Assembly: GCA_009859145.1 (NCBI GenBank)
Contig: VRVR01000019.1
Coordinates: 133,290 to 197,289, forward strand
Direction: 5' to 3'
DNA from: Andalucia godoyi And28
Lineage: Eukaryota; Protista; Jakobida
Length of the DNA stretch: 64,000 nt
Each line of letters opens with the position of its first letter. Positions within the stretch are counted from its first letter, which is position 1. The notes under the pieces are model-generated. The model made no database searches, was not told where the DNA came from, and saw only the letters and a program-made list of their open reading frames with translations. A program made the position numbers and the translations under genes. This document shows positions 1 to 63,976 of this stretch, piece after piece.

Positions 1-126
1 AGAAGTCTGGAGAGGTTTTTTGGGTCGGGAGGGTGCTAGTAACTCGCTGCTCTTCTCGTTTGCTGTTTATTGCTTATTTACATACTTTGAAGAATCGTCG
101 ATTGCCATGACGATACGCGCTACATT

Positions 127-8061: not shown

Positions 8062-10767
8062 ATGGGTCGTAAGCGTGCTGCGGGGTCTGGGTCGGCAAGT
8101 GGTGGGGTGTCTGCTGCAGGTTCCGCGATCGGACTTCCCCACGGACACCCACATGGGCATCCGTCGTCTGTGTCTGCTGCAGGTGGAGGCGGTCCATCAG
8201 CCGGGGCTGTCATCATGCCACAAATTTCATCTTCGCGCTTTGTTGCAGCCGAATACTGCGATTTTATCAAAATGGAATTTGATCGATTAATGGCTGAAAA
8301 CATGACTGCGCGCGCGGACCTCGAGCGGTCCCTTGCAGATCGAGAGGAAATGGATGCAACGGCTAAAAAGTTTTTTGAGACTGCATATTTTTTGAATGTG
8401 CAACTTCACAAGCAAAACATTGTGAACGAACGTCTATTTGCAATAGCGGAGAATCTTTTGCGTTCTCATGCCAATGAGCCTCTTGCTGCGATTTTGGACA
8501 AGCAGCTTTCTGCCGTGGAAGACGTGTCCGTGCAAGAAACGCAGAAGAGGATCGCGCAGAATATGCTTTCCTACCATCCATTTCCTATCGAGTTGTACAT
8601 GGATGATGGACGGCAGTTCCACCACCATGTTTCTGCCGCACAAACACAAGCCCATGCCGTCGCAGCAGCCCATGCTGCTCATGCTCATGCACAAACACAG
8701 GCACAGGCACAGGCCGCTCATGCTGCTGCTGCTGCGGCGGCGGCGCAGGCGCATCATCAGCAGCATCTGCATGGAATGCAATTGGGCTTGCCAATGATGC
8801 CAATGGCTGTTGCGATGCCGCAAACACAACCGCAACCGCCCGGGCAGCCGTATCCGCATCCTTTGACACCAAACTCTGGAGGTCAGCACGGACATGCCAT
8901 GTCAAGTCCACAGAGCATGTCCATGAACACTTCCTTTGAAAACAAGACTCTGGGTTCGCCAAGCACGGGAGTCATTCAAGGCGGCTCTCCTTTTAAGCAG
9001 TTGCCGCAGCAGCAGCAACAACAGTTCCTTCACCTGCACCATCAACAACAACAGCAGCAAATTCAGCACATGCAACAGCATCACCATCAACAACAACACC
9101 AGCTTCATCATCATCAGCAGCAACAGCAGCAACAGCAACAACAACAGCTGCAGCTGCAGCATGTTGACAATGTGCCAAGCGTTTCTGTTTCATCTCCTCA
9201 AATGATGGACATCGAGACATCGGAGACAACGCGAAACCCGCCCGAGACTCTTGCATCGCCGCTGCTGCAGACGTCTGCAGACTTGGGATCGTCTTTGCAT
9301 CCTTCGCATGTTCCCAGTTCTCCATCTGGTCAGCCATTAGGAAGCTCTTCAACAGCCGAGCCTTTGAAAACGGCGGATGAAAAATCGACTCCGATTGTGT
9401 CGGATTCCACAATCGTTTCAGGTACTGGGTCTCTCTCTGGCCTCAGCCCAGGTTCTGGTTTCAGTTCCGGTTTCGGGGCTCAATCTGGATCTGGATCCGG
9501 TTTGTCAGCTGCTACTGCAAAGCCGAGCCCGTCGTCCCCGTTACCCGTGCACGCGTCCTCCGAAGCGGGTCTTCACTCGCAAATATCCGGAAGCGCTGTG
9601 ATGCAATCTTCTTCCGATCACGCTGCTGACCTGTCGTTTTCCAGTAGTGGCGATGTGCGTAGCAGTGTCCCTGCACCGCAAGGGAGTTCTGAGGTTGCTT
9701 CATCAGGATCCTCTATTACGTCGAACACGGATTCGCTCGAACCGTTCGTGCGAAAAACCAACCTGAAGTTGTTGTACGCTTACGAAACAACGTACCCAGT
9801 TTCTGCCATGACGATTGACGTTCAAAGAAACAGGCTGTACGTTGGACATCGCGGAGTGTTTGAAACATATGTTCTCGATTCCGGAAGATGTCTAGGCAGT
9901 GAAACCATCTTTGATCGATTTCATATTCGTGCTTCCGTACTTTCGCTGAGTGGTCGCCACTTGTATTTATGTGGAGAATCGCAGGTCGTAGTGGGCTGGG
10001 ATCTTCAGACGCATCAGCGGTCATTCCATTTGGAAACTGGCGTGCATCAGTATGCATTGACCTTTTCGGACGAGAACACGCTGCTTTGCAGTCAGGCTGC
10101 TGGAGTCATTGCTGCGTGGGACGTGCGATCGAATGGCATGGCCCCTGTTGGAGTCTTCCCCCGACCAAACGCGCAGGCGTCTCGCATTTCCTCTTTGCAA
10201 ATGCTCGGAGAAGGGTCGCCTTTCGTGATTGCTGCTGATGCCGGTGGCTTCATTCGTGTGTGGGATGTCCGCATGATGGTTTCCAATCTTTCCAATCCCT
10301 CCGTCATCAGCTGCAACGAAAGCAAGGGAGCATCTCTTCTGTCTGCAGAAGAGATGCGCGAGTGTGGATTGGTTGCAGTTCGCGGGTTTGGTCATGCAGT
10401 CAACTCAGTGTCGGTGCGCAATGGAACTGTCTTGGCTGGAAAAGCAGACGGCGAATTGCTTATTCTGTCTGCCGAGACGCTTGACGTGTTGGGCGTCGAA
10501 AAGACAGACTCTCCGATCCTCGCTGTGAAGCACATGAAGTCTTCGCCCGGCCACACCGAAGAAGAGGCGGTTCCTGCGATTGTCTGTGGGCAAAACGGCA
10601 ACCTGCAAGTTTGGGGTGGTCGACAGTCTCTTCTTGTGGACGACGCAGTCTTATGCATTGACACTACCGACCGGTTTGTCGCGTGTGGCTTGTGGAACCA
10701 CTCGTTCAGCGTCTTTATCGACAGCTCCGTGGAGTCTGTCTCCCCGATCCACACAGTACATCGTTGA
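8062..10767 (+). CDS. Groucho/TLE (Tup1-superfamily) transcriptional corepressor: TLE_N helical domain, Q/H/S-rich linker, WD40 propeller
   Basis: N-terminal DFIKMEFDRL...FFETAYFLNVQLHKQNIVNERL resembles TLE DRIKEEFQFL...[22 protein letters not shown]. WD40 blades HIRASVLSLSGRHLYLCGESQVVVGWDL and QYALTFSDENTLLCSQAAGVIAAWDV resemble the TLE blades. Confidence 0.8.
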   Translation: MGRKRAAGSGSASGGVSAAGSAIGLPHGHPHGHPSSVSAAGGGGPSAGAVIMPQISSSRFVAAEYCDFIKMEFDRLMAENMTARADLERSLADREEMDATAKKFFETAYFLNVQLHKQNIVNERLFAIAENLLRSHANEPLAAILDKQLSAVEDVSVQETQKRIAQNMLSYHPFPIELYMDDGRQFHHHVSAAQTQAHAVAAAHAAHAHAQTQAQAQAAHAAAAAAAAQAHHQQHLHGMQLGLPMMPMAVAMPQTQPQPPGQPYPHPLTPNSGGQHGHAMSSPQSMSMNTSFENKTLGSPSTGVIQGGSPFKQLPQQQQQQFLHLHHQQQQQQIQHMQQHHHQQQHQLHHHQQQQQQQQQQQLQLQHVDNVPSVSVSSPQMMDIETSETTRNPPETLASPLLQTSADLGSSLHPSHVPSSPSGQPLGSSSTAEPLKTADEKSTPIVSDSTIVSGTGSLSGLSPGSGFSSGFGAQSGSGSGLSAATAKPSPSSPLPVHASSEAGLHSQISGSAVMQSSSDHAADLSFSSSGDVRSSVPAPQGSSEVASSGSSITSNTDSLEPFVRKTNLKLLYAYETTYPVSAMTIDVQRNRLYVGHRGVFETYVLDSGRCLGSETIFDRFHIRASVLSLSGRHLYLCGESQVVVGWDLQTHQRSFHLETGVHQYALTFSDENTLLCSQAAGVIAAWDVRSNGMAPVGVFPRPNAQASRISSLQMLGEGSPFVIAADAGGFIRVWDVRMMVSNLSNPSVISCNESKGASLLSAEEMRECGLVAVRGFGHAVNSVSVRNGTVLAGKADGELLILSAETLDVLGVEKTDSPILAVKHMKSSPGHTEEEAVPAIVCGQNGNLQVWGGRQSLLVDDAVLCIDTTDRFVACGLWNHSFSVFIDSSVESVSPIHTVHR

Positions 10768-22103: not shown

Positions 22104-25100
22104 ATGTCTCGAGCAGTGCTGTCGGATACATCTCGTCAGATTCTGTCTTCTGTGGTTGTGGAAGAAAGTCGACGGATTGCGAGTTATTGCTCGACCTTGT
22201 CGTTCGGAAGGTACCTTCGCTATCGACCTCGGACGGCATGGTGGCGACTGGGTGCCGTGGTGTTTACGCTTGTGTTGATGCTGATTGTCATTGTGCTGGA
22301 GTCGCTGGATGGAGTTGTCGACCGCAGGAATTCGACGATTTCTGAATTTGCAGTGCTGGTCTTTCTTGTTCTGTTGGGACTCGTAATTGATTTTCGCGAA
22401 TGGTACCTGCAGAACTCAGAAATGCTAACAAAGTATCGGTCTCATCTTTCACTTTTCGGATCACGGGTGTCTGCGGAGGAGAAACCCTTTTCTGATGAGG
22501 TTGCGTATTTCTTGTCGTTCTTATGCGAACGGGGGTACTTCGAGCATCTGAATGCGTACCAGTCACTGATTCGAGAGGTTCTGTGGCCAGTACTGCAGGA
22601 AGACGGGTCGTTTGCGCTGCAGCATGCGTTGCTCTGTGTGAAGGGAGACGTCATTCACGGCTCAGTAGCAACATGGATGCCGGATTACTTGCGCTGTCAT
22701 TCTGGCATATACAATGCACACTCGCGGAACATCGTCTCGGAATCCGAGGCAAATCCAATCACTTCAAGTATCCACCAGCGCTCTCAGCGATTTTCAGTGA
22801 ACGCCGCTTCCTTTGCCACCACGTCTAGCATGGATCGTGTGTCGTCATTCTTGCTCGGCGACGCTTGCCCAACCTGCGTTGCAACAAAGTGCATCGTCCT
22901 TGACGAGACTCCACTCTTTACAGTGTCTGAAATCATATTGACGACAGTTCGTGAAGAGAACGAGAGACGAGCAGATCGCCCCATGTCAACATTGGTGTCG
23001 CAGTTTCGAAAGGTAGTGTATCCACTGACTGTTCTCATGTTTGCAGGAATGTGGATCGTTTACGGATCCCTGTTTGGGCCGGACTCAATCATTTTTGTTG
23101 TGTCGTTCCTGTACATGGTTATGGCTTTGGAGTATCCAGTCATTCTCCACGCACTCTACTGGATCGGAAATGCATTCTTAGTTGCACAGTGGCATCCTAG
23201 TTTTTGGTCCAGAGGAGTTTCAAAAGATTCCGGGTTTCCCGGTCAGCAAAAGACTGAAGGACCGCCCGTCCAGGACGAGGATGCTTTTCGAGTTCCTGTA
23301 CGAGGCGAGAAACTCGACAAGGTTCGAAGACGTATTGCAGAAGAGATCCTGCATCCATCTCCAGTGTCAAGCCCTTTGCCAGTTGGCGAAACACGACCGA
23401 GGAGGGCGATGGGCAGCGAATTTGGCCTCTTTCAGGAGGACGTAGTTGTGCGAGAAGGTGACCACGGAAGAATGGAAACCGGGGACTGGAGCGAAGACGA
23501 TGACTCGGACATCAGCACGGATTCAGACGGAAGTTCGTCGGATGCTGGTGTTCCTCCGGAGGGCATCTGTGCACACTATCACGGAAAATCCGGTACAGAG
23601 CACGATACGCTTCCCGAGATGCAGGACTTTCGCAAACTTCCTCTTCCCATTCAGAAGACACCGGGAGTCGCGCTCATATTGAAATCACTGTGGAATGTCA
23701 TCAGCGCTAGTCCCACTTGTCTCGTCCGCAGCCGGAATCCGGTGGAGAATCTGGGGTGTGCAACAATATTTTCGTTTGTCCACCGGGATGGCATCCTTGG
23801 CAAGACACACCGGACGCCTGAGCAGATAACGTTTCTTACAGAAGCAGGCGAGGCCACTACTCTTCATCTTAGCTATGAAGAATCCTACACGAATCGCATT
23901 TCTTTTTCCGATCCCGATTGGCACAATCACATAGAATCCCTGAAGCCACTTGGGCTCCAGTTTCTGATGCATGCACCCGAGCGTCGTTTTTTCGATGGTG
24001 TTTTGCACACACATCGATCCTGGCGGCAGTTGCTCTGTCTGCTGGCAAAGGAAATAGGATTTGAAGCTGGCGTGCTTTCGCAGTACCATCCTGTAGCTTG
24101 CTTGTCCAAGGAAGCAGGGTCCGTAATTGAACTGCAAATTGAGACTGCGGAAACCGGCACCCAGATTCTGCTGGAAGGGTGCGGTGACCGAGTTCTTGCA
24201 CATTGTGCCGAGTATTTTTGTGGGAATGACATCAAGCCCCTGAGCACCGAACTGCGGAAGGAGCTATTGACGGTGCTTCTAAGTTGGATTCGCCAGCAGG
24301 ACATCATCCCTGTTGCGTTTGCGTGCCGAAATGTCGACGACGATGAAACGAACAGCAGCAGTCCTCCTCTTGCTGTTTCGGCAAGCACCCCAAGCGGCAT
24401 GTCGACGCAGCCGGAAGGCACAGCCGCCGCGACTTCTGAACTGACTGGCAGAGGTGTTCGAGTCCGGCAACCGTACGCAGGAGAAGAACACGGACAATGC
24501 GAAGTGTGCTCTTCATTGTTGCGCAATGTCGGGATGCATTCGGAAGAAGACGCTGCGACATCTTCGCATCTGAATTCTTCAAATATAGAACTTCATATGC
24601 AGACAGATGAGCTGGACGGCGAGTCTGCCAGTAACACGAAATCTTCTGCCGTTCAGCCGGACATCTTCATTGGATTTGCTGGCTTTGGACTGCGAGTCCG
24701 TCGATCTGCCCCGCAGTTTGCGCAGATGCTGCACGACGCCGGCATCCGCTTTGTCTATTTTGGTGAAGAAAGCGAGCGCCGGACGAAATCATTCGGCGCA
24801 AAACTGGGATTGGAAACCGATTGGAATTCTTGCATTTCTCTGGAGCCTCACAAGGATGCCGTTTCGTTGGATCTCTCGGACCTGAAGGCGCATCTGCCTC
24901 ACGGAATTCCGTCCATTCGTGATCATCTGCAGGACGTCGACGACGTTCCGCTGCTCGTCTCGCTGTTCTGCGATTCTCGACCCGAAGGAGTCGCGGACAT
25001 GACCTCGATTTATCATGAAAATGGCGACATTGTGTGCTGTGTCGGAAACGCGTCATCCCTGCGGCACTTGAAGACGTTTTTAACCGCGGATGTGACGCTT

Positions 25101-26108
25101 GGCACTGCACCTCATTTTACAAGCTGGATTCTGCCAGATGGCTTGCCCACGTCATCTGTGTCTGTTGCAGCCACGCTTCCGCACACCCACTTGTTTGAGT
25201 GTCTTTCGCTGTCGCTCTACGAAGCTCGCCGGGTTGCCCACAATGTGCGCCTTGCGCAAGCGGCGTGGGTCGTGCTGATCAGCGCCTTGATGACGCTTTT
25301 TGCAATTTCCGCGATTGCGCTGGGGATTGCGCCGCCGGTTTCTGGCACGCAGTTGTTGTTTGTGATTTGTGTCGTTTGTCCCTTGCTGATATTACCGCTG
25401 GTGAACACGGATGTCGACCCGAACATCTTGAAGACACTGCCGGAGAAAAACCGGCAGGTGCAAGACCCGTGGTTCTACGGAGGCCTTTGGGCACTACGTG
25501 TTCTTCCAAGTGCCATATTTCTGGCATTTCTTCACGCATGGCTCATATTTACGTTCCACATCGGTCTGTGCAGCAGCTCCGCAGCCAATGCGCAGTCGAG
25601 CAATGACGGCCCGTCGAGTTTTGGCAGTGTGTTTTGGACGGAAAAGTACGGAACTGCATATCTGGAGTCTTCGAAATCGTACTCGCCATTGTCATTGACG
25701 TCGTCGGTAACCGACTGTCATTCCTCATCGTCGCTTGCGTCTGTCGTCGCCGACGCAAACGCAACGGTTTTGTGGATCCTCACGCTGTACAGCATATTCT
25801 TGGTTTCCGGATTCATCCACAGAACGCAGTCCTTGTGGCAATTCAGTCCATGGAAGAACAATCGAACGTGGTGCATGATTGCAATCATTACTCTTGGTCT
25901 GCAGTCTCTCATGTCAGGCTTGGTATGGCCGATTCCGCTTTCCCGAATCCCTGTCGAGATCTGGGTGATTGCCATGGTTGCGTGGCCCATTGTCCTGCTC
26001 TTGACCACGGAGGCATCCAAGGCGCGCGATGCCAAGCTGTATGTACGCAATCAAAAGCGCTTACGCATTGTTTTTGACACGCGTCTCGGGATGCATTCCC
26101 CTGTCTAG
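22104..26108 (+). CDS. TMEM94: TMEM94 (KIAA0195/ERMA)-like P-type ATPase-related multi-pass membrane protein (1334 aa)
   Basis: AGIRFVYFGEESERRTKSFGAKLGLETDWNSCISL, HLPHGIPSIRDHLQDVDDVPLLVSLFCD and the C-terminal LRIVFDTRLGMHSP match TMEM94 (…EFDTKLGMNSPF). Multiple TM segments. Confidence 0.88.
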   Translation: MSRAVLSDTSRQILSSVVVEESRRIASYCSTLSFGRYLRYRPRTAWWRLGAVVFTLVLMLIVIVLESLDGVVDRRNSTISEFAVLVFLVLLGLVIDFREWYLQNSEMLTKYRSHLSLFGSRVSAEEKPFSDEVAYFLSFLCERGYFEHLNAYQSLIREVLWPVLQEDGSFALQHALLCVKGDVIHGSVATWMPDYLRCHSGIYNAHSRNIVSESEANPITSSIHQRSQRFSVNAASFATTSSMDRVSSFLLGDACPTCVATKCIVLDETPLFTVSEIILTTVREENERRADRPMSTLVSQFRKVVYPLTVLMFAGMWIVYGSLFGPDSIIFVVSFLYMVMALEYPVILHALYWIGNAFLVAQWHPSFWSRGVSKDSGFPGQQKTEGPPVQDEDAFRVPVRGEKLDKVRRRIAEEILHPSPVSSPLPVGETRPRRAMGSEFGLFQEDVVVREGDHGRMETGDWSEDDDSDISTDSDGSSSDAGVPPEGICAHYHGKSGTEHDTLPEMQDFRKLPLPIQKTPGVALILKSLWNVISASPTCLVRSRNPVENLGCATIFSFVHRDGILGKTHRTPEQITFLTEAGEATTLHLSYEESYTNRISFSDPDWHNHIESLKPLGLQFLMHAPERRFFDGVLHTHRSWRQLLCLLAKEIGFEAGVLSQYHPVACLSKEAGSVIELQIETAETGTQILLEGCGDRVLAHCAEYFCGNDIKPLSTELRKELLTVLLSWIRQQDIIPVAFACRNVDDDETNSSSPPLAVSASTPSGMSTQPEGTAAATSELTGRGVRVRQPYAGEEHGQCEVCSSLLRNVGMHSEEDAATSSHLNSSNIELHMQTDELDGESASNTKSSAVQPDIFIGFAGFGLRVRRSAPQFAQMLHDAGIRFVYFGEESERRTKSFGAKLGLETDWNSCISLEPHKDAVSLDLSDLKAHLPHGIPSIRDHLQDVDDVPLLVSLFCDSRPEGVADMTSIYHENGDIVCCVGNASSLRHLKTFLTADVTLGTAPHFTSWILPDGLPTSSVSVAATLPHTHLFECLSLSLYEARRVAHNVRLAQAAWVVLISALMTLFAISAIALGIAPPVSGTQLLFVICVVCPLLILPLVNTDVDPNILKTLPEKNRQVQDPWFYGGLWALRVLPSAIFLAFLHAWLIFTFHIGLCSSSAANAQSSNDGPSSFGSVFWTEKYGTAYLESSKSYSPLSLTSSVTDCHSSSSLASVVADANATVLWILTLYSIFLVSGFIHRTQSLWQFSPWKNNRTWCMIAIITLGLQSLMSGLVWPIPLSRIPVEIWVIAMVAWPIVLLLTTEASKARDAKLYVRNQKRLRIVFDTRLGMHSPV

Positions 26109-48651: not shown

Positions 48652-51002
48652 GCTGGAGCTGGGAAACTGCTTCTTGATGTTTTCTGCAAAGTGATTCAAT
48701 TTCTTGTGAGCGAGAACAGAACACAGGGTGTCGGCAGAAATGCGGATCACTACAAATGATTCCAGCTGCAGTTTCTCAAGGGATGAGCACAGGGAAGAGC
48801 GCAGGTCGGAACTGAAAGGCTTAACAATGGACCACACATCCCTCTTCTCTTGCAGGTCTTGAATTCGTTGAAGCATGATCGATTTCTCGTGCTTCCGTCG
48901 AGTCATATATTCCAGCATGTCTTCCAGACGGTCCGCTATCTTTGGAACGCGTCGCAGCATCATCAGCGAGGAGGATACGCGCAAGTGATGTGTGAAGACG
49001 TGGGGAAACTCTGCAAGGACTGTGGACAACGCAAGGCTGCCCAGTGCAGGATCCACCAGCACAACACATTCCTCGCGATCGAAAGATCCAGACGATTGGG
49101 ATCGTTCAAACTGCGCTCGAAATTTCTCCTGCGTCTTCCTTTCCTTTTCGAGTCGCTTTTCGACCTTCTTCTCTTCTTCCTCCTTGATCTTCGTCAGCGT
49201 CTCCAGCGCCTTCTTCTTCTTATTCTCCAGTTTCTTTCTGAATGCGTCGGCCTTTCGGTACATTGAGGATTCCGAGTCCATGCTCAGCAAGGAGCAACCA
49301 AATTGCTTAATTACCTCAACGTCTATCAGGATAGAAGCATCCTCAAGCGCCCTCAGCTTTCGAGATGCGAGCAGTTGACTGGACGACGACGACGACGACG
49401 AGCGACCAGTCGCACTTCTGCGACCAGCAGATGGTGAGCAGTCACGAGACGACGGAAGAGAGATGACCGCATCTGGCGTGAGAGGACGGAAATTGACAGA
49501 AAACCCGTCATTGTCCAGTTCATGACGATTTTGAATTCCAGAAGTTGATGATCCAAGCACAAATGCCTGCTGGACAGCCAATGAATCATCGCCGTCAAAG
49601 CCAAAACCATTACCGTCGACAACGACGGTGTCATCGTCATCATCATCTGAAATTTCAATTACATCATCGGCGCTGTGAGAGGAGGCTGTCCTTTCCGGTG
49701 GGTCATGAAACGACACGGAGTCGCGAGCCGTGGACAATACTGAAGCCGCATCTATTGGTTTCCAAGTCGAACTGGAGGGCTGAGCCGCAGCGGCCATGTG
49801 TCGCCTTATGGCATCCATCAGTCTGGATCCTACTATGAAAAAACAAGGAATTAGAGAGCAGTTTGAGAAAGAAAAGTAACCATAGCAGTATATAGGAAGG
49901 AACAAACCATCTTACTTACCGTGGGAATCTTTGTCCGTGCTCGTGTCGTTCTTGGTCGGTTTCGAGCTACGCAAAATCAGCGGAAAATGCGCAGAAAAAA
50001 GAAAATGTGAGCAACCATGAAGCAGAAGAATTTAAAAAAAAAAACACCAGGAAAAGAAGGGAAGCAACAGGAAGTTCCATACCGAACGACTCTCAAAAAC
50101 TGCGGACTAAAAGGCGATTCTTGGGCTAGGTTGATCAGCGATGAAGTAGACGATGATTTTGCTTGCTCAGGAGTTTTCTGTGCGGGTCCGCCGTGTTTGG
50201 TTGAAACAGTTGTCGGAGACGTCGACAAGGCTCGTTCTCGTTCATGATTGTTGTCGATTCGCGGAGAAGGTGAACACGCGGACGATGAAACGGAACTGGA
50301 GGCTGGGGGAAACGAAACTGTGGTTGGCGACGCTGCCGATTGGGATGCAGTGGGCGGTATCTCGCACGACAACGAAGCAGTTCTCCGTTTCTTCACCGGG
50401 GGACAGTCTTCAATACGAACGTCATCCAAAGAAAGAAAGCCTTCCGGAATCCCAGTGTCTGCAGATTCCGATTCCAACGCCGTTTTACGGGAGACACCAC
50501 CATGGCGCTGGTCTGCTATTGTGGAATCCAATCGTAATGGATCGCATGTTCTGAGCTGCTGCGACGGAATCATCGCAGCCTCCCGTGCATCAATGGAGGA
50601 AGCCGGGCTTGCGTGCGCCATGGTCGCAACCGATTGGTCCGGAGAAGATGACCGGCGGCTTGGCGAAGAAGACGGGCGTCGTGGCGATCTCGACCGCGAC
50701 GATGGCGTGGACGGTTGGACGGTCTCCGTTTCATGGTCAGGAAGACCAGGACCGTGACCGGACTCGGTCAAGAAACGATCCATGTGTGGAGTACGTGCGG
50801 ATGGATCTCTTGCTGGATCGCAGTCGGTGCCTGTCACGTGGCGCACAACAGTTTGCATTCCGCTGTCAAAAAGCACTTCTAAAGTGTTTTCGGGATTCTG
50901 AAATAGCCGTAAGTGACTTCTGATGTACTTGATGTCATGTTCAGAATCCACAGGGAACACATTCAACACAAAAGAAAGCCAGTCGGAGATTTGGTCACTC
51001 AT
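47905..51002 (-). CDS. EME1: EME1/MMS4 (non-catalytic MUS81 partner), predicted 3 exons: 50083-51002, 49920-49966, 47905-49832 (964 aa)
   Basis: C-terminal ERCC4-like domain lacks the catalytic ERKxxxD motif, followed by MLLALPGVAEDVAKSIRLRYPT..HLMEAY...RRIGEALSRKVY (EME1 HhH region). Introns 49967-50082 (GTATGG..GCTGAT..TAG) and 49833-49919 (GTAAGT..CTAAT..TAG) join the two ORFs in frame (2895 nt). Confidence 0.82.
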
Positions 51003-55907: not shown

Positions 55908-57269
55908 ATGGCGGAACGGATTGTGTGCAACACGCTTCACGAATGGTTTCCGTCATTGCAGTCGCGCGTTAGTGTGGCCCAGTTGCTGGTTTCCGAGAGC
56001 TCGTCCGCATCGCACTCGCTCTACGTGACGATTTTCAGCGAGATCTACGCATCGCAGTTACGGCCGTTCCTGTTGGAGGCAAGAGCACAGCGGTCGGTTC
56101 TCATCTTGCAAAATGCACGGCCTGCACGCATTGCAGCGTTCGACGAGCTGTTTCGCATGCGCTTCGTGGAAAAGGTAAAGGAGCTTGCGAACATGCCACG
56201 CGCGCCGTCGCTCTTTCACATCCTATCAGCCATTTGCAAACAACGTCGCAGCGCTCTGCAGCACCAGCACCAACAGCACAAAAAAATTGAAGCGGAGAGC
56301 GGAGAGAAGACGGAGGAGCAGGAGGAAGAGAAAAAAAATTGGAGCTGTGCTACAAAATCATCTCGTCCGGCTTCTTCGACATCGTCAGGCGCTCGTATTC
56401 TACTGGAGCTGCGACTTTTGCAGTCAGACGATGGATCGCAAGAATTAGAGGATGAAGATCGAGAAGATCCGCTTGGCTTGGTGCAATTCCTTGCGTTTGA
56501 GCAGGATGCGCTGGAGAGCTTGCTTCGGCGGAAGTTGCCGCAATCTGGGACCCGCTTGTCGCTGGGACGCATGAGTCGACTGATTACTCGATTCGTAGAC
56601 CAGAATTCGCAGTTGCAGCGCCATCTGTGCACGATGCACAGAGAAGCAGAGATGGTGCCTTCACACAGCGGACGCAGCTGCACCTCGGGTGAAGAGGGAG
56701 ATGTTGCAAATATTATGAATCGTGTGTATCGCACGCTGCTGCATCTTTTGAGCACGCTCGAAACAACTTTGGAGTTCCTATCAACTGCTAGCTTGTCTCT
56801 CGCTGCGACATCGCCATCGCCATCGCCATCGCCATCGCCATCAAGACTGTCAGCGCTCTGTAGGGCGGTACCATCACCAGCCGAAAGCATGGTCCGGTCA
56901 CATGCGACAAGCCGACTGTCCTGTGCTCTGCAGAGGATCCTAGATTCACATGTCACCGAAGACGTACTGGACTCTCTGTCGCAGCTTGCCTCTGTTTCTT
57001 CTCTTCACCCACGTCACCTGCAACCACCATATTTATCGTTTGCGTCGCCCTGTCCACGATCCATGTCCTCGCCGCTGCCGACGTTGCCCCCACTGCAGAC
57101 CGAAAGCGCAGATGAGAGCGCAGACGCAGACGTGAGTGAATATCAAAGGCTTGCCAAGATAGCCCAATCCATCATTGCGTCCTTTGAATCTTTGCAGCGC
57201 GATTCGACCGCCGAGTCTCTCTCTGCATTTTGCACTCTCCTCGCAAATCTCGATGGCAGCAACCCGTAG
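55908..57269 (+). CDS. Hypothetical, mostly alpha-helical protein (453 aa)
   Basis: Long ATG-initiated ORF, Leu/Ser-rich, with an SPSPSP repeat. No family recognised. Confidence 0.65.
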   Translation: MAERIVCNTLHEWFPSLQSRVSVAQLLVSESSSASHSLYVTIFSEIYASQLRPFLLEARAQRSVLILQNARPARIAAFDELFRMRFVEKVKELANMPRAPSLFHILSAICKQRRSALQHQHQQHKKIEAESGEKTEEQEEEKKNWSCATKSSRPASSTSSGARILLELRLLQSDDGSQELEDEDREDPLGLVQFLAFEQDALESLLRRKLPQSGTRLSLGRMSRLITRFVDQNSQLQRHLCTMHREAEMVPSHSGRSCTSGEEGDVANIMNRVYRTLLHLLSTLETTLEFLSTASLSLAATSPSPSPSPSPSRLSALCRAVPSPAESMVRSHATSRLSCALQRILDSHVTEDVLDSLSQLASVSSLHPRHLQPPYLSFASPCPRSMSSPLPTLPPLQTESADESADADVSEYQRLAKIAQSIIASFESLQRDSTAESLSAFCTLLANLDGSNP

Positions 57270-57551: not shown

Positions 57552-60500
57552 TTAGGATCGTCGGACGTCAGGATGCTCGACGCGTCCCTGGTGAGCCGAG
57601 TCTCGGATTGCGGACTCGGAATCCTGATGGACAAGTTTCTGGTCGCCCGGACCAAGATCTGGGTGCTGGGTGGTCGGGGACCTTGGCGAGCCGTCTTCAG
57701 AGCCAACTCGCTTGTGCGGTTGCGCCTGCGGTACAGAAAGGTACGTTTGTCCGTCAGCAGACTGGAGCCAGGACGCATAGGCGCCCTTTGATGTCGGATT
57801 GAGATGCGGGTTAGGGTCTGCACCTGCAGCATCGACCTGTTCCCAATACCTCTTGTTTGCGACGAGTTGTTCAAAGCAAAATGTAAAAGACTTGTCAAAG
57901 TTTGCAAGCGCCTCGAACAGCGGCAGGGTGATGAAGTTTGCGAATCCGATCTGGCACTTTGCAAACTTTGTGTCACGTGAGCAGAACGGTGAGATCGATA
58001 GTCCAATCTTGGTTTCGTGGTCTCCCTGCTTGAAAAACTCCTCCATGATGCGGTCTGTCCATTGCAGATAAAGCGGCTGGACCTTTGCAATATTGGAGAC
58101 ATCCGACGCCTTGATGAAGATCGAGAGCATGAGCTTCATTTCCTCGGGCGTCTTCGGCTTGAATTTCTCTCCGCTAGGCCGCACCAACTGGGTCTGGTAC
58201 TTTCCGAGGTACTCAAAGTGTCGCCCAAGATCTGTTGCAAGAATCAAGGTGATGATAATGTCTCGGATCTGGAGTCGTGTTTCCATGGGCAAGTCATCAA
58301 TGAAGTTATTCTCCGCCTTGAGCAGCAGCGCAAATGTTGTTGAGCAGTGATGCATCTCGAGCACCGCCTGATTGGAATACAACAAGGCAAGTGGAGACAT
58401 TGTCTTGATCTGGAATGGGTTTGCCAAACCGGGATGGTCTACATCGTGCGCCACGGTTGCGATAATCACCGCAAGAATCTCGATATCCGACAACAATTCC
58501 CGGAACCCGCCGTGCTCCAGGAAGAAGATGGTCGACTGAAGCACATCGGCTGCATGCGTCGAATTGTGGTATGGATTGTCGGCATGATAGTGAGCCTCGA
58601 CATCCGTGAAAAAGTTCTTTGCTCGAACCTCGGAGATCGACAGGCGATCAAAGAGACCATACTTGTACATGCACCCCAGCGCCATTGCATACAACGGCCG
58701 CCCATTCGCGCGACGAGCGAAGTCAAACACATCAAAGTCCCATCGCACCAAATTCGCGTCCACCGCAGCAATCAGGGCGCGGGGGTCCACTTCCGGAGCC
58801 GCTCGTGCCAGGGCAGACAGACCATAGGTCATAGCAGGCTCCCCGCCATTAGGATCCGCCGAGACCGACTTACGACGCTTTGCAAACTGCAGGACAGATC
58901 GCACAATTGTCTGCTCACGGGCTTCCTTATCTGCATTCTCATTGCCATTCTCGTCATCATCATCCTCGCTGTTGGCCGGGTTCGACGTCGCAAGTTCCTC
59001 CACCATGTAGCGCAGTGCCTCGTCATCTGTTGCACTGATCGATCGTTGGCTTCCGCCTCCATTTGCATCGCCATTGTTCTTGTTGTTTTTGTTGCGACGA
59101 TTGCGACGGGACCGTTCGAGGAATTCAGGGCGGAAGAAGCGATGCGAAGAAAGAACGTCCTGGACATAGTCAAAGTCCTCGACGGACATCTGCGACCCCT
59201 CAAGGAGCGACGGGTTCTTGAGAGCCTGCGTTCGGAAGTGCATGAACAAATCCACGACTTTGCGGATCGGCAAGACCGTGTCGTCCGCCACAACAGGTGC
59301 CCCTGATCCAGGAACAATTGACCCGCTGACGGAAGCGTTCGCCGAATTTGGTCCACGCGTGCGCATCGTGCGATACGACGACCGAGATCGTGACTGCTGC
59401 AGTCCCGAGTAGGGTGCCGGTATATTCCCCGTCGCACCCGTACCAGTCGTCGCTAGTGAATCCCCGGCATTCGCAGCAGTACCTGGAGCTGAAACGGGTG
59501 CTGGAGCAGCGGCTGCAGCGGTTACAGGTGCTGGTTCGGCCGCGACCTCTGCAGTGCCGTCGGTGCGATACGAGGCTGGATGTGCGATGTTATTTCCCGC
59601 GTCAGCGTTGTTCTCATTATCATTGTCATTGTCTGCATCGTCCACAAGTTGCGAATGGACCACGTCATACATGTCAATCTTGCGCTCGAGGGTGTCGACC
59701 TCAAACTGCAATTCTTCGATGCGGGCTTGCATGGTTCGCCGCTCCTCGTCCTCCATACCTGCCAATGCCGCTCCCACCGCCTGATGCTCGAATTGTGTTG
59801 CGGCATCGTTATTCTTCATTCCAATGTTATTACCACTGCAGCTGTTGTTGTTGCTCTCGTTGAAGGAATCCTCATCATTATACCAGTCGTCCATAATGCT
59901 GTTGCCGTTGCTGTTGTTGTTATTGCCGGAAGAAATGAAGCTTGACTTTTGGTTGTTATTGAAGGAACTGGAAGAGCCGAGGATTCCAAAGTCGTAGATG
60001 GACAGCACGAGTTCGGTAGCGATGCGGCGCGATTCCGCAGGATCGTCGACTCGCGTGAGTTCAATTGAGACGGTCTTCGGTGACAGCGCACAGCAGCAGT
60101 TTGGAGGCCAAGCAAGCACAGATTTCTTCTGGAGAGAAGACGCGCGGAATTCACCGAGCGGGAACTTGACCACAACCGTCTTCATCTCCGCCGTGATGGG
60201 AATACTGCTTCCGGAGGTCCGGAGCTTGTTGGAAGTCGTCGTTGTGGCGTAATTCGCAGCGGGAGCTGACGTGGAAGAAGCTGATTTTGACAGATAGTCC
60301 GCAGACGGTCGCACAAGGAACTTGCCCATTTGGAACGACGCAGCAACAAGGGCGTAAAGCGCTGTCGTGTCCACATACTTGCGGAACATGCCCACATCTG
60401 CTCGCCAAGTCATACACGTCCGCGAATCCGTTACGTAAAAGACATCCATGCGCGGTCGACCGGCTCCACCAGACAGTCCCCCGCCATTCGACATTCCGTA

Positions 60501-60782
60501 CCCCGATCCTGACCCCGATCCCGATCCTGATCCCGAAGAGATCGTCGTCGTCCCATTCTTGGCAGCCGGTGCCTGCACCTGCGATTGCGACTGTTGTTGC
60601 GCCTGTAGCGCTGAAGAGGATCGATCGTTTCGACCATATCCGTAACACAGGTATCGGGTCTGGGCGACATCCCAGTGACCAAACACTGGATTTGGTTTGC
60701 TTAGATCAGGGCTCTGGTCGCCAAACGGATCAAGCGTTGCCACTCCGGCACCAGATGCATCTTTGGAGGCTCCACAACCCAT
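57552..60782 (-). CDS. Class I 3',5'-cyclic nucleotide phosphodiesterase with an MGC acylation motif (1076 aa)
   Basis: YHNSTHAADV, HDVDHPG, LEMHH, ILATDL, IKASDVSN, EEFFKQGD.E, Q.GF..FI..PLF. The likely start is ATG 60782 (MGCGASK), preceded by a TTTACAG acceptor-like site. Confidence 0.95.
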   Translation of the reverse strand: MGCGASKDASGAGVATLDPFGDQSPDLSKPNPVFGHWDVAQTRYLCYGYGRNDRSSSALQAQQQSQSQVQAPAAKNGTTTISSGSGSGSGSGSGYGMSNGGGLSGGAGRPRMDVFYVTDSRTCMTWRADVGMFRKYVDTTALYALVAASFQMGKFLVRPSADYLSKSASSTSAPAANYATTTTSNKLRTSGSSIPITAEMKTVVVKFPLGEFRASSLQKKSVLAWPPNCCCALSPKTVSIELTRVDDPAESRRIATELVLSIYDFGILGSSSSFNNNQKSSFISSGNNNNSNGNSIMDDWYNDEDSFNESNNNSCSGNNIGMKNNDAATQFEHQAVGAALAGMEDEERRTMQARIEELQFEVDTLERKIDMYDVVHSQLVDDADNDNDNENNADAGNNIAHPASYRTDGTAEVAAEPAPVTAAAAAPAPVSAPGTAANAGDSLATTGTGATGNIPAPYSGLQQSRSRSSYRTMRTRGPNSANASVSGSIVPGSGAPVVADDTVLPIRKVVDLFMHFRTQALKNPSLLEGSQMSVEDFDYVQDVLSSHRFFRPEFLERSRRNRRNKNNKNNGDANGGGSQRSISATDDEALRYMVEELATSNPANSEDDDDENGNENADKEAREQTIVRSVLQFAKRRKSVSADPNGGEPAMTYGLSALARAAPEVDPRALIAAVDANLVRWDFDVFDFARRANGRPLYAMALGCMYKYGLFDRLSISEVRAKNFFTDVEAHYHADNPYHNSTHAADVLQSTIFFLEHGGFRELLSDIEILAVIIATVAHDVDHPGLANPFQIKTMSPLALLYSNQAVLEMHHCSTTFALLLKAENNFIDDLPMETRLQIRDIIITLILATDLGRHFEYLGKYQTQLVRPSGEKFKPKTPEEMKLMLSIFIKASDVSNIAKVQPLYLQWTDRIMEEFFKQGDHETKIGLSISPFCSRDTKFAKCQIGFANFITLPLFEALANFDKSFTFCFEQLVANKRYWEQVDAAGADPNPHLNPTSKGAYASWLQSADGQTYLSVPQAQPHKRVGSEDGSPRSPTTQHPDLGPGDQKLVHQDSESAIRDSAHQGRVEHPDVRRS

Positions 60783-62119: not shown

Positions 62120-63976
62120 ATGTCCGACGACTATTCATTTTCTCTTTCGGGACCCGCATCTGCATCTGCATCTGCGTCCTTCCCAAACAAACCGCAGATG
62201 CAAGCAAAGCATTCAACATCTCTCTTTGGCAATGCATCATCGTCGTCAGGAACAGGAACTGGAGCGGGAGCGGGGTCGGGGTCGGGGACAGTAGACTCTC
62301 CTCATCGCAGACCGTTGCTGCTGAACAATAGAGCTGGATCGGGACGCGAGATGACGGATCGTCCGGTGATTCTCGGGCTTCAAGGACGCCGAACAGGCTT
62401 GGAAATCGCCCCTTCGTCGATCCAGAAGGACGCAGATGGTCTCGATAGCATCGACGCGTACTTTGAACCAAAGCAATCTCAACCACCATCACAGTCGCAA
62501 TTGCGATCGCAGCCTGCTGGTCTTCACCGGCCACAGCAACAAAAGACAAGGCAGCCATCTGAACAGAAACGGATGATTGCGAAGAGCACCTATTCTGCTG
62601 TGGAAGATGCTCGTGATTCGAACAACCACAACAACTCGGACGAGAATGGTGGAAATAACAATGCGGATAGGGATGGCGGTGATGACGACGACGATGCGGG
62701 GTTCTACCATTTGAATCAGAGCGGTTTTCCGTTTCGGAAGCAAAAAAAGAAGATTGTGTCGCCCGTCATGGGCACGAAGAATTTGATCAAATCTCGGAGT
62801 CCGTCGACTCCACTTGATTTGGTCGCGTCTGCAGCGGAAAAGATGGGCAGCGATTCTCCGGAAATCGCACTGACAAAGACGAAGAAGAAGCCGACGGCGT
62901 CGCGATCGACGTTGGAACAAAACAAGGATGCTGAACAACTTAAAACAGGAAAGGACAGGGACAAGGGACTGCAACGGCTGCCTGCCAAGAGAATGATTTC
63001 CGAGTCGGAAGAAGAGGACGTGATCGACGCGAACGTCTCAGGCACTAGGGACGGACATATTGATGACGATGACTCGTTTCAAATGGTAATGCCAAAAAGG
63101 AAAAAGGAACCAGCCAAAAAACAGAGTGCCAAAACAACAGCAGAAAGGACGGTTGTGCCGCCACCTGCAAAAGCAGCAAAGAAGACGGCAACGGCGAAGC
63201 GAACGGTGGCTGCTCCAAAGCAGCAGCAGAAGAGCCTAGATGTGGACGAATCGTTTTCAGGTGACAACAATGAAGAGGATGCAGATGCGTCGTTTAGGAT
63301 CCCTGTGGAAGACGTGTCCGATGATGACAACATGTCGGGCAGCGATGCTGGCTTCAGGAGGTCCAGACGGCACAGGATCCAGCCGGTGAACTGGTGGAAA
63401 GGGGAGCAGCCTGTGTATGTCAAGGAAGACGCGTCTGGAGTCACGCTCAAGGAAATCATCAAAGCCCCGCCAAGCGATGTCAAGCCGAAGCCAAAGAAGC
63501 GGCCGCAGCGCTCGAGCGGGAACGGAAATGCTTCGAGCGGTTCGTCTAAGATTCAGCTTCCTGCTTCGCGAGATGTGCCAATTGTCGTGCGCAAGAAGGG
63601 CGCAGCGCAGTCGTTCCCGGTGGTTAGTACTTTTGATCACGAATTGGACCAGTTCGTCGAATCCAGTGCAGAGTATAGTCGATCGGCAGTGTTTGAAACA
63701 GGGCACTTTACTTGTGGGTCCCTTATCGTTGCTCGGAATGCCGCATTCTCAAACTCGATGAGTAATGATGCCGATATTGCCGGCAAGCGTTGTGCGTTGG
63801 TTTGCTTCATCCGAGCGGGCGCTGCCCGTGTCACGATCCACGAAACCGCCGTCGAGCTCAACAGAGGCTGCTACTTTATGATTCCACCAAAAAACTCATT
63901 TTCTGTCGAGACGTTGAGCACCTCGTCGTGCGAAATCGTGTATTTTAAGTATGGCGCTTCATCGGAAGAAGCCTAA
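62120..63976 (+). CDS. CENPC: Centromere protein C (CENP-C/Mif2)
   Basis: Mif2-N-like GRRTG...KDADGLDSIDAYF; CENP-C motif RRSRRHRIQPVNWWKGEQPVY (63356-63418); basic/acidic linker; C-terminal cupin (FTCGSLIV...FIRAGAARVTIHE...RGCYFMIPPKNSFSV). Confidence 0.87.
   Translation: MSDDYSFSLSGPASASASASFPNKPQMQAKHSTSLFGNASSSSGTGTGAGAGSGSGTVDSPHRRPLLLNNRAGSGREMTDRPVILGLQGRRTGLEIAPSSIQKDADGLDSIDAYFEPKQSQPPSQSQLRSQPAGLHRPQQQKTRQPSEQKRMIAKSTYSAVEDARDSNNHNNSDENGGNNNADRDGGDDDDDAGFYHLNQSGFPFRKQKKKIVSPVMGTKNLIKSRSPSTPLDLVASAAEKMGSDSPEIALTKTKKKPTASRSTLEQNKDAEQLKTGKDRDKGLQRLPAKRMISESEEEDVIDANVSGTRDGHIDDDDSFQMVMPKRKKEPAKKQSAKTTAERTVVPPPAKAAKKTATAKRTVAAPKQQQKSLDVDESFSGDNNEEDADASFRIPVEDVSDDDNMSGSDAGFRRSRRHRIQPVNWWKGEQPVYVKEDASGVTLKEIIKAPPSDVKPKPKKRPQRSSGNGNASSGSSKIQLPASRDVPIVVRKKGAAQSFPVVSTFDHELDQFVESSAEYSRSAVFETGHFTCGSLIVARNAAFSNSMSNDADIAGKRCALVCFIRAGAARVTIHETAVELNRGCYFMIPPKNSFSVETLSTSSCEIVYFKYGASSEEA

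Follow-up and report, generated by a model that had tools for sequence, protein, structure and literature searches.

A lipid-anchor-bearing phosphodiesterase of Andalucia godoyi with a new, probably PAXX-like N-terminal domain

The soil jakobid flagellate Andalucia godoyi has a compact genome of ~20 Mb in which introns are absent from most genes (PMC7050145). We analysed a stretch of 64,000 nucleotides from this genome (contig VRVR01000019.1 of assembly GCA_009859145.1, referred to below as the window) and focused on a gene for a cyclic-nucleotide phosphodiesterase (PDE) on its reverse strand, for which an earlier note made from the DNA letters had proposed an acylated N-terminus, a head domain of the XRCC4/SAS-6/CCDC61 type and a coiled coil. 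We found that the gene belongs to a real, narrowly distributed family of lipid-anchor-bearing PDEs with a new N-terminal domain. At a probability of roughly 0.55, the protein is a membrane-tethered class I cyclic AMP (cAMP) phosphodiesterase with a PAXX-like dimerisation or docking head. PAXX is a member of the XRCC4 superfamily, whose members XRCC4, XLF and PAXX take part in DNA end joining and whose members SAS-6 and CCDC61 help to assemble centrioles and basal bodies (PMC7267773). The hypothesis of an XRCC4-superfamily head was stated beforehand and came back as the top structural match across the PDB, with a compatible topology.

Results

A small family of phosphodiesterases with a lipid-anchor motif

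The open reading frame listing and its translation gave an intronless gene for a protein of 1076 amino acids (positions including the stop codon in Table 1). The reading frame starts at position 60782 of the reverse strand with the first ATG to follow an in-frame stop (sequence context GAGATGG), and the product begins with MGCGASKD. On this protein, the region singled out by the earlier note (59650-60782) corresponds to aa 1-378 and the segment that it took for the head (59985-60449) to aa 112-266.

To define the family, we used a collection of ~15 billion proteins, grouped into clusters with 1.84 billion representatives. When these representatives were searched exhaustively by HMMER with the head alignment, only two relatives came back, P0001 (E 5e-99) and P0005 (E 7.5e-7, with the match spanning the entire head); another hit, P0006, was a repeat protein without any aligned stretch and was discarded. 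Both relatives come from JGI metagenome 3300042934. P0001 (964 aa) is an ortholog that is colinear with the A. godoyi protein from MGCGASKD to the C-terminus, and P0005 (959 aa) opens with MGCGASK and carries a C-terminal PDE domain. The catalytic domains of the window PDE and P0001 were 84% identical (85% over aa 676-1000), and that of P0005 was 56% identical to each. The P0001 gene (L001, 1778-4672) has a GC content at third codon positions (GC3) of 0.64 and the P0005 gene (L004, 1767-4646) one of 0.52. Because GC3 differs and P0005 is equidistant from the other two proteins, P0001 and P0005 stem either from two organisms or from two old paralogs. No synteny with the window was found around either gene.

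Other searches did not enlarge the family. A word-indexed search with aa 1-460 yielded no homolog, as low-complexity candidates flooded the list, and the full-length search yielded P0001 as the one useful relative; its Volvox matches were set aside for their unrelated transmembrane architecture. Two scans of metagenome DNA, with head patterns and with MGCGASK plus head patterns, gave 233 and 336 pattern matches, none of which was confirmed. Furthermore, the head was not found in any PDE retrieved by a catalytic-domain search, and the 64-kb window held no second copy of it. The head family has three known members, namely the window PDE, P0001 and P0005. The homolog search that had been suggested for the same fusion in other flagellates was thus rewarded by two metagenomic MGCGASK-PDEs and by no further relatives among the 1.84 billion representatives.

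We found that MGCGASK was unchanged in all three members. It fits the N-myristoyltransferase pattern G-{EDRKHPFYW}-x(2)-[STAGCN]-{P}, with a small residue at position 3, Ser at position 6 and no Pro at position 7, and Cys3 is a potential palmitate acceptor. The acylation signal MGCGAS that had been claimed for this protein is therefore present and invariant in the family, and it also stands on an unrelated PDE described below. The same hexapeptide opens FAP12 and FAP138, which are ciliary proteins of Chlamydomonas (PMC9436004). Membrane anchoring of the A. godoyi PDE through the predicted dual acylation is well supported by this motif; flagellar localisation is plausible in a flagellate, and a flagellar cAMP microdomain around the enzyme is speculation.

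The unrelated PDE, P0002 (826 aa; L002, 1248-3728, ENA ERZ929029; GC3 0.77), belongs to another environmental eukaryote. Its N-terminal region has no detectable relation to the head, and it has a long helical, coiled-coil-like stretch ahead of the catalytic domain. We considered P0002 as a distant family member with a canonical stalk and rejected it, as hhalign showed no relation to the family or to PAXX, XRCC4, CCDC61 or SAS-6. PDEs with an MGCGAS anchor may have had more than one origin.

The catalytic domain was unambiguous. The PDEase_I profile (PF00233) matched aa 738-972 with an E-value of 1.6e-77 and 260.9 bits (cut-off 24.8), covering profile positions 1-237 of 238. PDB sequences of PDE4C, PDE4B, PDE4D, PDE7A and PDE8A matched aa 676-996 with E-values from 1e-54 to 7e-61, the best being PDE4C (2qym_A, 7e-61). 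In addition, the translation contains the metal-binding motifs YHNSTHAADV (H739, H743) and HDVDHPG (H779, D780, H783) and the nucleotide-recognising Gln (Q944 in KCQIGF), all invariant in P0001. The domain was closest to chytrid fungal PDEs (37-40% identity) and then to animal PDE4/7/8, and from this PDE4/7/8-like similarity we infer that cAMP is preferred to cGMP. No GAF, PAS or any Pfam domain besides PDEase_I matched the window PDE at E<=10, and the GAF and PAS families likewise had no match in P0001 or in the N-terminus of P0005, which bears out the claimed absence of both.

The best-conserved part of the protein beyond the catalytic domain was a helical block upstream of it (aa 500-556). 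This block aligned with P0005 and, weakly, with the sequence immediately upstream of the catalytic domains of chytrid PDEs (P0007, P0008) and with some PDE8-like proteins. On inspection it looked similar to the upstream conserved regions (UCR1/UCR2) of PDE4, an assignment that we rejected: hhalign aligned only the start of the catalytic domain, without significance, and the UCR1/UCR2 profile (PF18100) had no match in the window PDE.

The N-terminal head is a conserved domain

When the window PDE was aligned to P0001, the two halves of the head (aa 108-160 and 196-268) were 58-68% identical while their low-complexity flanks were 8-14% identical, showing that the head is a real domain under constraint. 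The segment of ~150 residues that had been described as free of low complexity is thus conserved and constrained, as supposed, and is interrupted by a low-complexity loop (aa 161-195). The length of this loop differs among all three proteins, and a tentative mapping onto the superfamily puts it at beta5-beta6, the site of the extra helix and loop of CCDC61.

The domain also begins earlier than had been thought. Beyond a 51-aa insert lies the conserved strand TRYLCYGYGR (aa 42-51), whose equivalent in P0001 was modelled as strand E17-25 and was paired by hhalign with PAXX RFVCYCEG. In P0005 the counterpart is RRLVILGRAR, which is contiguous with the head since the insert is nearly absent there. 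The low-complexity inserts at the predicted head loops and linker (aa 57-107 and 269-345; SGSGSGSGSGSG, Asn/Gln runs) are shorter, of other composition or absent in the relatives P0001 and P0005; they seem to have expanded recently, as surface loops would tolerate.

These data bear on the possibility that the first 670 residues have no autonomous fold and form a mostly disordered tether, whose conserved stretches would then be no more than binding motifs. Low-complexity sequence makes up over half of the N-terminal region, and the confidence of the AlphaFold2 (AF2) model described below, given as the predicted local distance difference test (pLDDT), was below 50 in 166 of the 321 modelled residues, as such a tether would have it. 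We hold it to be extremely unlikely against the two conserved blocks, 53 and 73 residues long, with their alternating hydrophobic strand patterns, which AF2 packs together with pLDDT up to 79. Moreover, P0005 is 23% identical, yet its head blocks were retrieved as a single unit.

Sequence and structure comparisons point to PAXX

All sequences used for comparison were checked against PDB chains ahead of the hhalign runs. The profile of the three heads aligned to human PAXX (residues 1-128) with a score of 32.4, a P-value of 2.4e-4 and a probability of 44%, pairing RFLCYAYC...GGLN...LYVTD with PAXX RFVCYCEG...GGFN-LYVTD. None of 400 shuffled PAXX sequences reached this score (mean 12.5, s.d. 2.5, maximum 27.3), reversed PAXX scored 13.5, and the result stayed significant with correction for five families. 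As a yardstick, accepted superfamily members compared with each other by the same shallow hhalign scored only 12-16. A greedy alignment remained colinear all the way from the opening strand to the junction with the stalk, where KTVSIELTRIDSDAEVHCTIAELVLS lay opposite PAXX SALAFDLSKVPGPEAAPRLRALTLG (last strand and stalk start). P0005 carries GGFNLKLLYIYD where the PAXX-like RFLCYAYC/RYLCYGYG...LYVTD match sits.

Weaker local matches fell at equivalent hairpin and strand-to-helix positions. For CCDC61 the top local match was the hairpin LELEVEDRMTADQWRGEF (P 0.044), and for XRCC4 it was the strand-to-stalk junction motif VSIELTRVDDPAE (P 0.04-0.08, probability ~1%); SAS-6 gave no signal. The matches to PAXX and CCDC61 lay in the first half of the head (aa 108-160), and the second half aligned colinearly with the part of PAXX and XRCC4 in which the last strand passes into the stalk. 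The two motif resemblances quoted in the earlier note are identical to these hhalign alignments for CCDC61 and XRCC4, and neither is significant alone.

AF2 models were built from the alignment of three sequences. In a second job, in which P0001 aa 25-345 formed the first row and the upstream strand and shorter loops were therefore present, the best model had a mean pLDDT of 52, and most of the structured blocks of the head reached 60-79 (about 60-80 over most of the domain), with weaker stretches between them. In P0001 numbering the modelled order of strands (E) and helices (H) was E17-25, then the first half of the head (E50-59, E64-69, H70-73, H79-91, E95-99; block pLDDT 62-73), H101-106, a loop, and the second half (E137-143, H149-156, E166-168, E172-180, H183-202), followed by disorder and a helix at 282-320. 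Within the second half, the strands and the first part of the terminal helix had block pLDDT of 60-79, with weaker stretches in between.

When this model was searched with Foldseek against 350,542 PDB chains, of which the best 50 matches were listed, rank 1 was 9cq3_H (E 0.052, probability 0.84, target template modelling (TM) score 0.44); chains G and H of this entry are PAXX. The second match had an E-value of 0.63 and a probability of 0.08, and the second-highest TM-score, 0.40, belonged to C. elegans SAS-6 (4gex_C). All remaining matches among the 50 had TM-scores <=0.26, including PH, PTB, roadblock and polo-box domains. The combination of AlphaFold and Foldseek that had been proposed as a check of the head hence put PAXX at the top and SAS-6 next by TM-score, with an E-value of 0.05 and from a model of moderate confidence.

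Several results weigh against a PAXX-like head. At E<=10, the Pfam profiles of PAXX, XRCC4, XLF and SAS-6 matched none of the three heads, while in a control the PAXX profile found human PAXX with an E-value of 2e-50. HMMER profiles of the head retrieved no superfamily member from the PDB sequences, giving nothing or weak coiled-coil matches. AF2 on aa 101-285 of the window PDE, which leaves out the upstream strand, gave a pLDDT of 37 and meaningless Foldseek matches, and in the second job the other four models had a pLDDT of only 39-44, so that one of five was usable. No Foldseek match had an E-value of 0.001 or better, and no other XRCC4, XLF or PAXX chain was among the 50 matches listed. 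Furthermore, AF2 was trained on PAXX, so that its model and the hhalign match do not count as two wholly separate lines of evidence. Finally, a heptad scan of P0005 found nothing comparable to the heptad segment of the A. godoyi protein between its head and the pre-catalytic block. Separately, Pfam matches to SLM4 (E 0.1-0.25) and Serglycin were dismissed, as they lay within low-complexity stretches.

We therefore weighed the alternative that the head has another alpha/beta fold, PH/PTB-, roadblock/longin- or PAS/GAF-like, and acts as a lipid- or ligand-binding regulator, the likeness to PAXX being an artefact of modelling. A layout of two or three strands, helices, three or four strands and a terminal helix also fits PAS-, longin- and PH-like topologies, known PDE regulatory domains are typically GAF, PAS or UCR, and the XRCC4 superfamily had neither Pfam nor HMMER support here, with a Foldseek E-value of only 0.05 for a single model of five. 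The same searches speak for PAXX on other counts: PH/PTB, roadblock and polo-box domains had TM-scores <=0.26 and probabilities <=0.08 as compared with 0.44 and 0.84 for PAXX and a TM-score of 0.40 for SAS-6; the sequence signal to PAXX (P 2.4e-4) was reached by 0/400 shuffles; and PAS, GAF and PH profiles had no match at E<=10. We judge another fold to be somewhat unlikely. The XRCC4-superfamily head that had been claimed is the best-supported fold, through Foldseek and hhalign, with three sequences at hand and no Pfam superfamily match, and a PAXX-like member of this superfamily is what the N-terminal domain probably is, as far as the models go.

The head as a probable dimerisation or docking module rather than a filament subunit

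We then considered how the head could assemble. Its terminal helix is ~20 aa long in the three proteins and ends with GILGSSSS in the window PDE, AILGG in P0001 and ALPVRR in P0005. A heptad segment of four repeats follows 77 low-complexity residues downstream of the head; AF2 models it as a helix with pLDDT 65-82, it has weak profile matches to the coiled coils of BST2 and MafA, and it also occurs in P0001. The heptad coiled coil that had been claimed therefore exists, at aa 346-373, but it is only 28 aa long, lies 77 residues past the head and is absent in P0005. Since the terminal helix is so short and the heptad so far away and missing from one member, the protein does not show a canonical head with a direct coiled-coil stalk. 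This weakens the superfamily claim without excluding it because the stalk of PAXX is also short.

Within the superfamily, identities between families are below 20%, and an additional helix with an unstructured loop between beta5 and beta6 is peculiar to CCDC61 (Ochi et al., PMC7267773). Most members form protofilaments through two interfaces, the coiled coil and head-to-head contacts, and PAXX is the exception, forming a dimer through a short stalk with no head-to-head contacts (PMC7267773). The earlier note had envisaged a membrane-anchored, filament-forming PDE that could organise a flagellar cAMP microdomain. In a model of this kind, head and coiled coil would self-polymerise in the manner of SAS-6, CCDC61 or XRCC4-XLF, and the filaments or lattice so formed along the flagellar membrane would be a structured cAMP sink. 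The best structural matches indeed fall in a superfamily of mostly protofilament-forming proteins, a heptad segment is present, the lipid-anchor motif is common to ciliary proteins and the organism is a flagellate. Against this, PAXX as the nearest relative does not polymerise head to head, the stalk is not continuous, the heptad has only four repeats and is lacking in P0005, hhalign gave no signal to SAS-6, and no counterpart of the head-interface Phe of SAS-6 and CCDC61 could be assigned. Self-polymerisation thus finds little footing and we regard it as improbable. Since PAXX, the closest relative, is without head-to-head polymerisation, we read the module as one for dimerisation or docking and not for filaments.

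Proposed mode of action

The features above would fit the following scheme for a membrane-tethered PDE with a PAXX-like head. After removal of Met1, Gly2 would be N-myristoylated and Cys3 S-palmitoylated, so that the N-terminal end would be attached to the plasma or flagellar membrane from the cytoplasmic side. Residues ~40-268 are modelled as one globular domain with two lineage-variable low-complexity loops inside, the closest member being PAXX. By analogy, this head and its short terminal helix may serve homodimerisation and/or partner docking rather than act as a polymerising unit, and in the lineage of A. godoyi and P0001 the 28-aa heptad segment could contribute a further contact as a parallel coiled coil. 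Long disordered linkers and the pre-catalytic helical block would join the N-terminal module to the catalytic domain, so that two catalytic domains may be held near the membrane, where they would hydrolyse cAMP locally.

Positions of the features and genomic setting

Table 1. Features of the A. godoyi PDE, with positions in the 64-kb window and regional identity to the metagenomic ortholog P0001 (aa, amino acid residues)
Feature	Residues (aa)	Position	Strand	Identity to P0001	Basis or remark
Complete coding sequence of the putatively acylated PDE		57552..60782	-		Open reading frame translation and full-length colinear alignment with P0001
MGCGASK, predicted N-myristoylation (Gly2) and S-palmitoylation (Cys3) signal		60762..60782	-		Read from translation
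N-terminal block	1-56			61%	
Conserved N-terminal block including strand TRYLCYGYGR (aa 42-51, 60630-60659)	8-56	60615..60761	-		Modelled first head strand
Low-complexity Gln/Ser/Gly insert between first strand and remaining head	57-107	60462..60614	-	8%	33/51 positions gapped in P0001
Head, first half: beta-hairpin (DVFYVTD / MTWRADV), helices, strand KFLVRP	108-160	60303..60461	-	68%	
Variable low-complexity Ser/Thr/Ala/Asn loop within head	161-195	60198..60302	-	31%	Low entropy
Head, second half: strands ending TVSIELTRV, then terminal helix PAESRRIATELVLSIYDFGIL	196-268	59979..60197	-	58%	
Asn/Ser-rich low-complexity linker	269-345	59748..59978	-	14%	Model pLDDT < 50
Single 28-aa heptad (coiled-coil-like) segment EERRTMQARIEELQFEVDTLERKIDMYD	346-373	59664..59747	-	46%	Heptad scan, 7/8 a/d positions hydrophobic
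Low complexity	374-499			20%	
Conserved pre-catalytic helical block, LPIRKVVDLFMHFR...VEDFDYVQDVLSSHRFFRPEFLE	500-556	59115..59285	-	79%	
Variable region	557-675			21%	
Class I cyclic-nucleotide phosphodiesterase catalytic domain	676-996	57795..58757	-		Pfam PF00233 and PDB matches

The window is dense in genes, nearly intron-free and coding on both strands. It also encodes coatomer gamma, RICTOR, a kinesin, a leukotriene-A4 hydrolase, a NOP2-type methyltransferase and a CENP-C-like protein. The exact 1076-aa product of the PDE gene was not found in the collection of ~15 billion proteins, and because of this absence the public A. godoyi gene model is probably missing or differently drawn, for instance starting elsewhere or with an intron wrongly called within low-complexity sequence. 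Nine of ten proteins neighbouring the PDE in the window were exact EukProt singletons.

The divergent upstream neighbour of the PDE gene (62120-63976, forward strand) encodes an acidic, low-complexity protein of 618 aa with a weak C-terminal match to the Mif2/CENP-C cupin (E 3e-4, under the Pfam cut-off), and we note it as a candidate jakobid CENP-C. On the same strand, the 901-aa product of 8062-10767 had a borderline match to the Groucho/TLE N-terminal Q-rich domain (33.4 bits, cut-off 32) as well as weak sub-threshold matches of the WD40 beta-propeller type; a co-repressor layout like that of Groucho/TLE would be surprising in a jakobid. No Pfam family was matched at E<=0.001 by the products of 127-2628 (833 aa), 22104-26108 (1334 aa) and 55908-57269 (453 aa), all on the forward strand and all exact EukProt singletons, or by that of 49977-51002 (341 aa, reverse strand).

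Discussion

To our knowledge, and in the account of the superfamily cited above (PMC7267773), heads of the XRCC4 superfamily occur only in stand-alone scaffold proteins. We found no description of an XRCC4-like domain in a PDE in the searchable literature, in keeping with the claim that the architecture was an unrecognised one. If the fold is true, a signalling enzyme at a membrane would have taken over a head of this superfamily for its targeting or dimerisation, and a Discoba branch would be added to a superfamily whose members have diverged too far for sequence to link them. For PDEs, a new type of N-terminal regulatory domain would stand beside the GAF, PAS, UCR and calmodulin-binding domains, and the protein would be a candidate for the means of keeping cAMP close to the membrane in a free-living flagellate. 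The general importance is limited unless the fold or assembly is confirmed, because the family is tiny (3 sequences among ~15 billion proteins). The boldest reading, that of a sixth and new branch of the XRCC4/SAS-6 superfamily, the first to be enzyme-fused and lipid-anchored, which, like SAS-6 or CCDC61, self-assembles and so builds an ordered PDE array on the inner side of the flagellar membrane of a deep-branching flagellate, walling off a flagellar cAMP compartment, seems to us very unlikely.

Comparison with known systems

PAXX (PDB 3WTD; 9CQ3 chains G/H) is the best Foldseek match of the A. godoyi head model and the sole superfamily member with a significant profile match to it, with a colinear strand-to-helix junction. 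Both have a short helix after the head and then a long disordered region. The PAXX family of Pfam (PF15384) does not match the PDE head, which, unlike PAXX, has two long low-complexity loops, an N-terminal lipid-anchor motif and a fused enzyme. PAXX is a small nuclear scaffold in DNA end joining, and its C-terminus binds Ku.

Likeness to the other members is more partial. XRCC4 shares an hhalign motif match at the last strand-to-stalk junction, has no Pfam match and possesses an uninterrupted stalk helix of >80 residues, as compared with ~20 aa in the PDE head. SAS-6 (4gex_C) reaches the second-highest TM-score to the head, and CCDC61/VFL3 has its extra helix and loop at beta5-beta6, where the tentative mapping places a short helix and loop of the PDE head. 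In CCDC61 and SAS-6 a long coiled coil leaves the head directly, which is not so in the PDE, and neither protein is lipidated or carries an enzyme domain. The PDE head, known here from sequence and model, shows no sign of the interface by which those proteins assemble into rings or filaments. FAP12 and FAP138 share Gly2 and Cys3 within the identical MGCGAS hexapeptide and are unrelated to the A. godoyi PDE apart from the N-terminus.

Among PDEs, the catalytic domains of animal PDE4/7 and of the PDE4/7-like chytrid enzymes are 37-40% identical to that of A. godoyi, and the chytrid enzymes weakly share the pre-catalytic helical block. PDE2/5/6/10/11, PDE8 and trypanosomatid PDEB have GAF or PAS domains N-terminal to catalysis, whereas the A. 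godoyi PDE has neither, and the UCR1/UCR2 of PDE4 long isoforms were not detected in it. These long isoforms nevertheless follow the same general logic as the A. godoyi PDE, in which a unique N-terminal region for targeting or dimerisation precedes a conserved catalytic domain.

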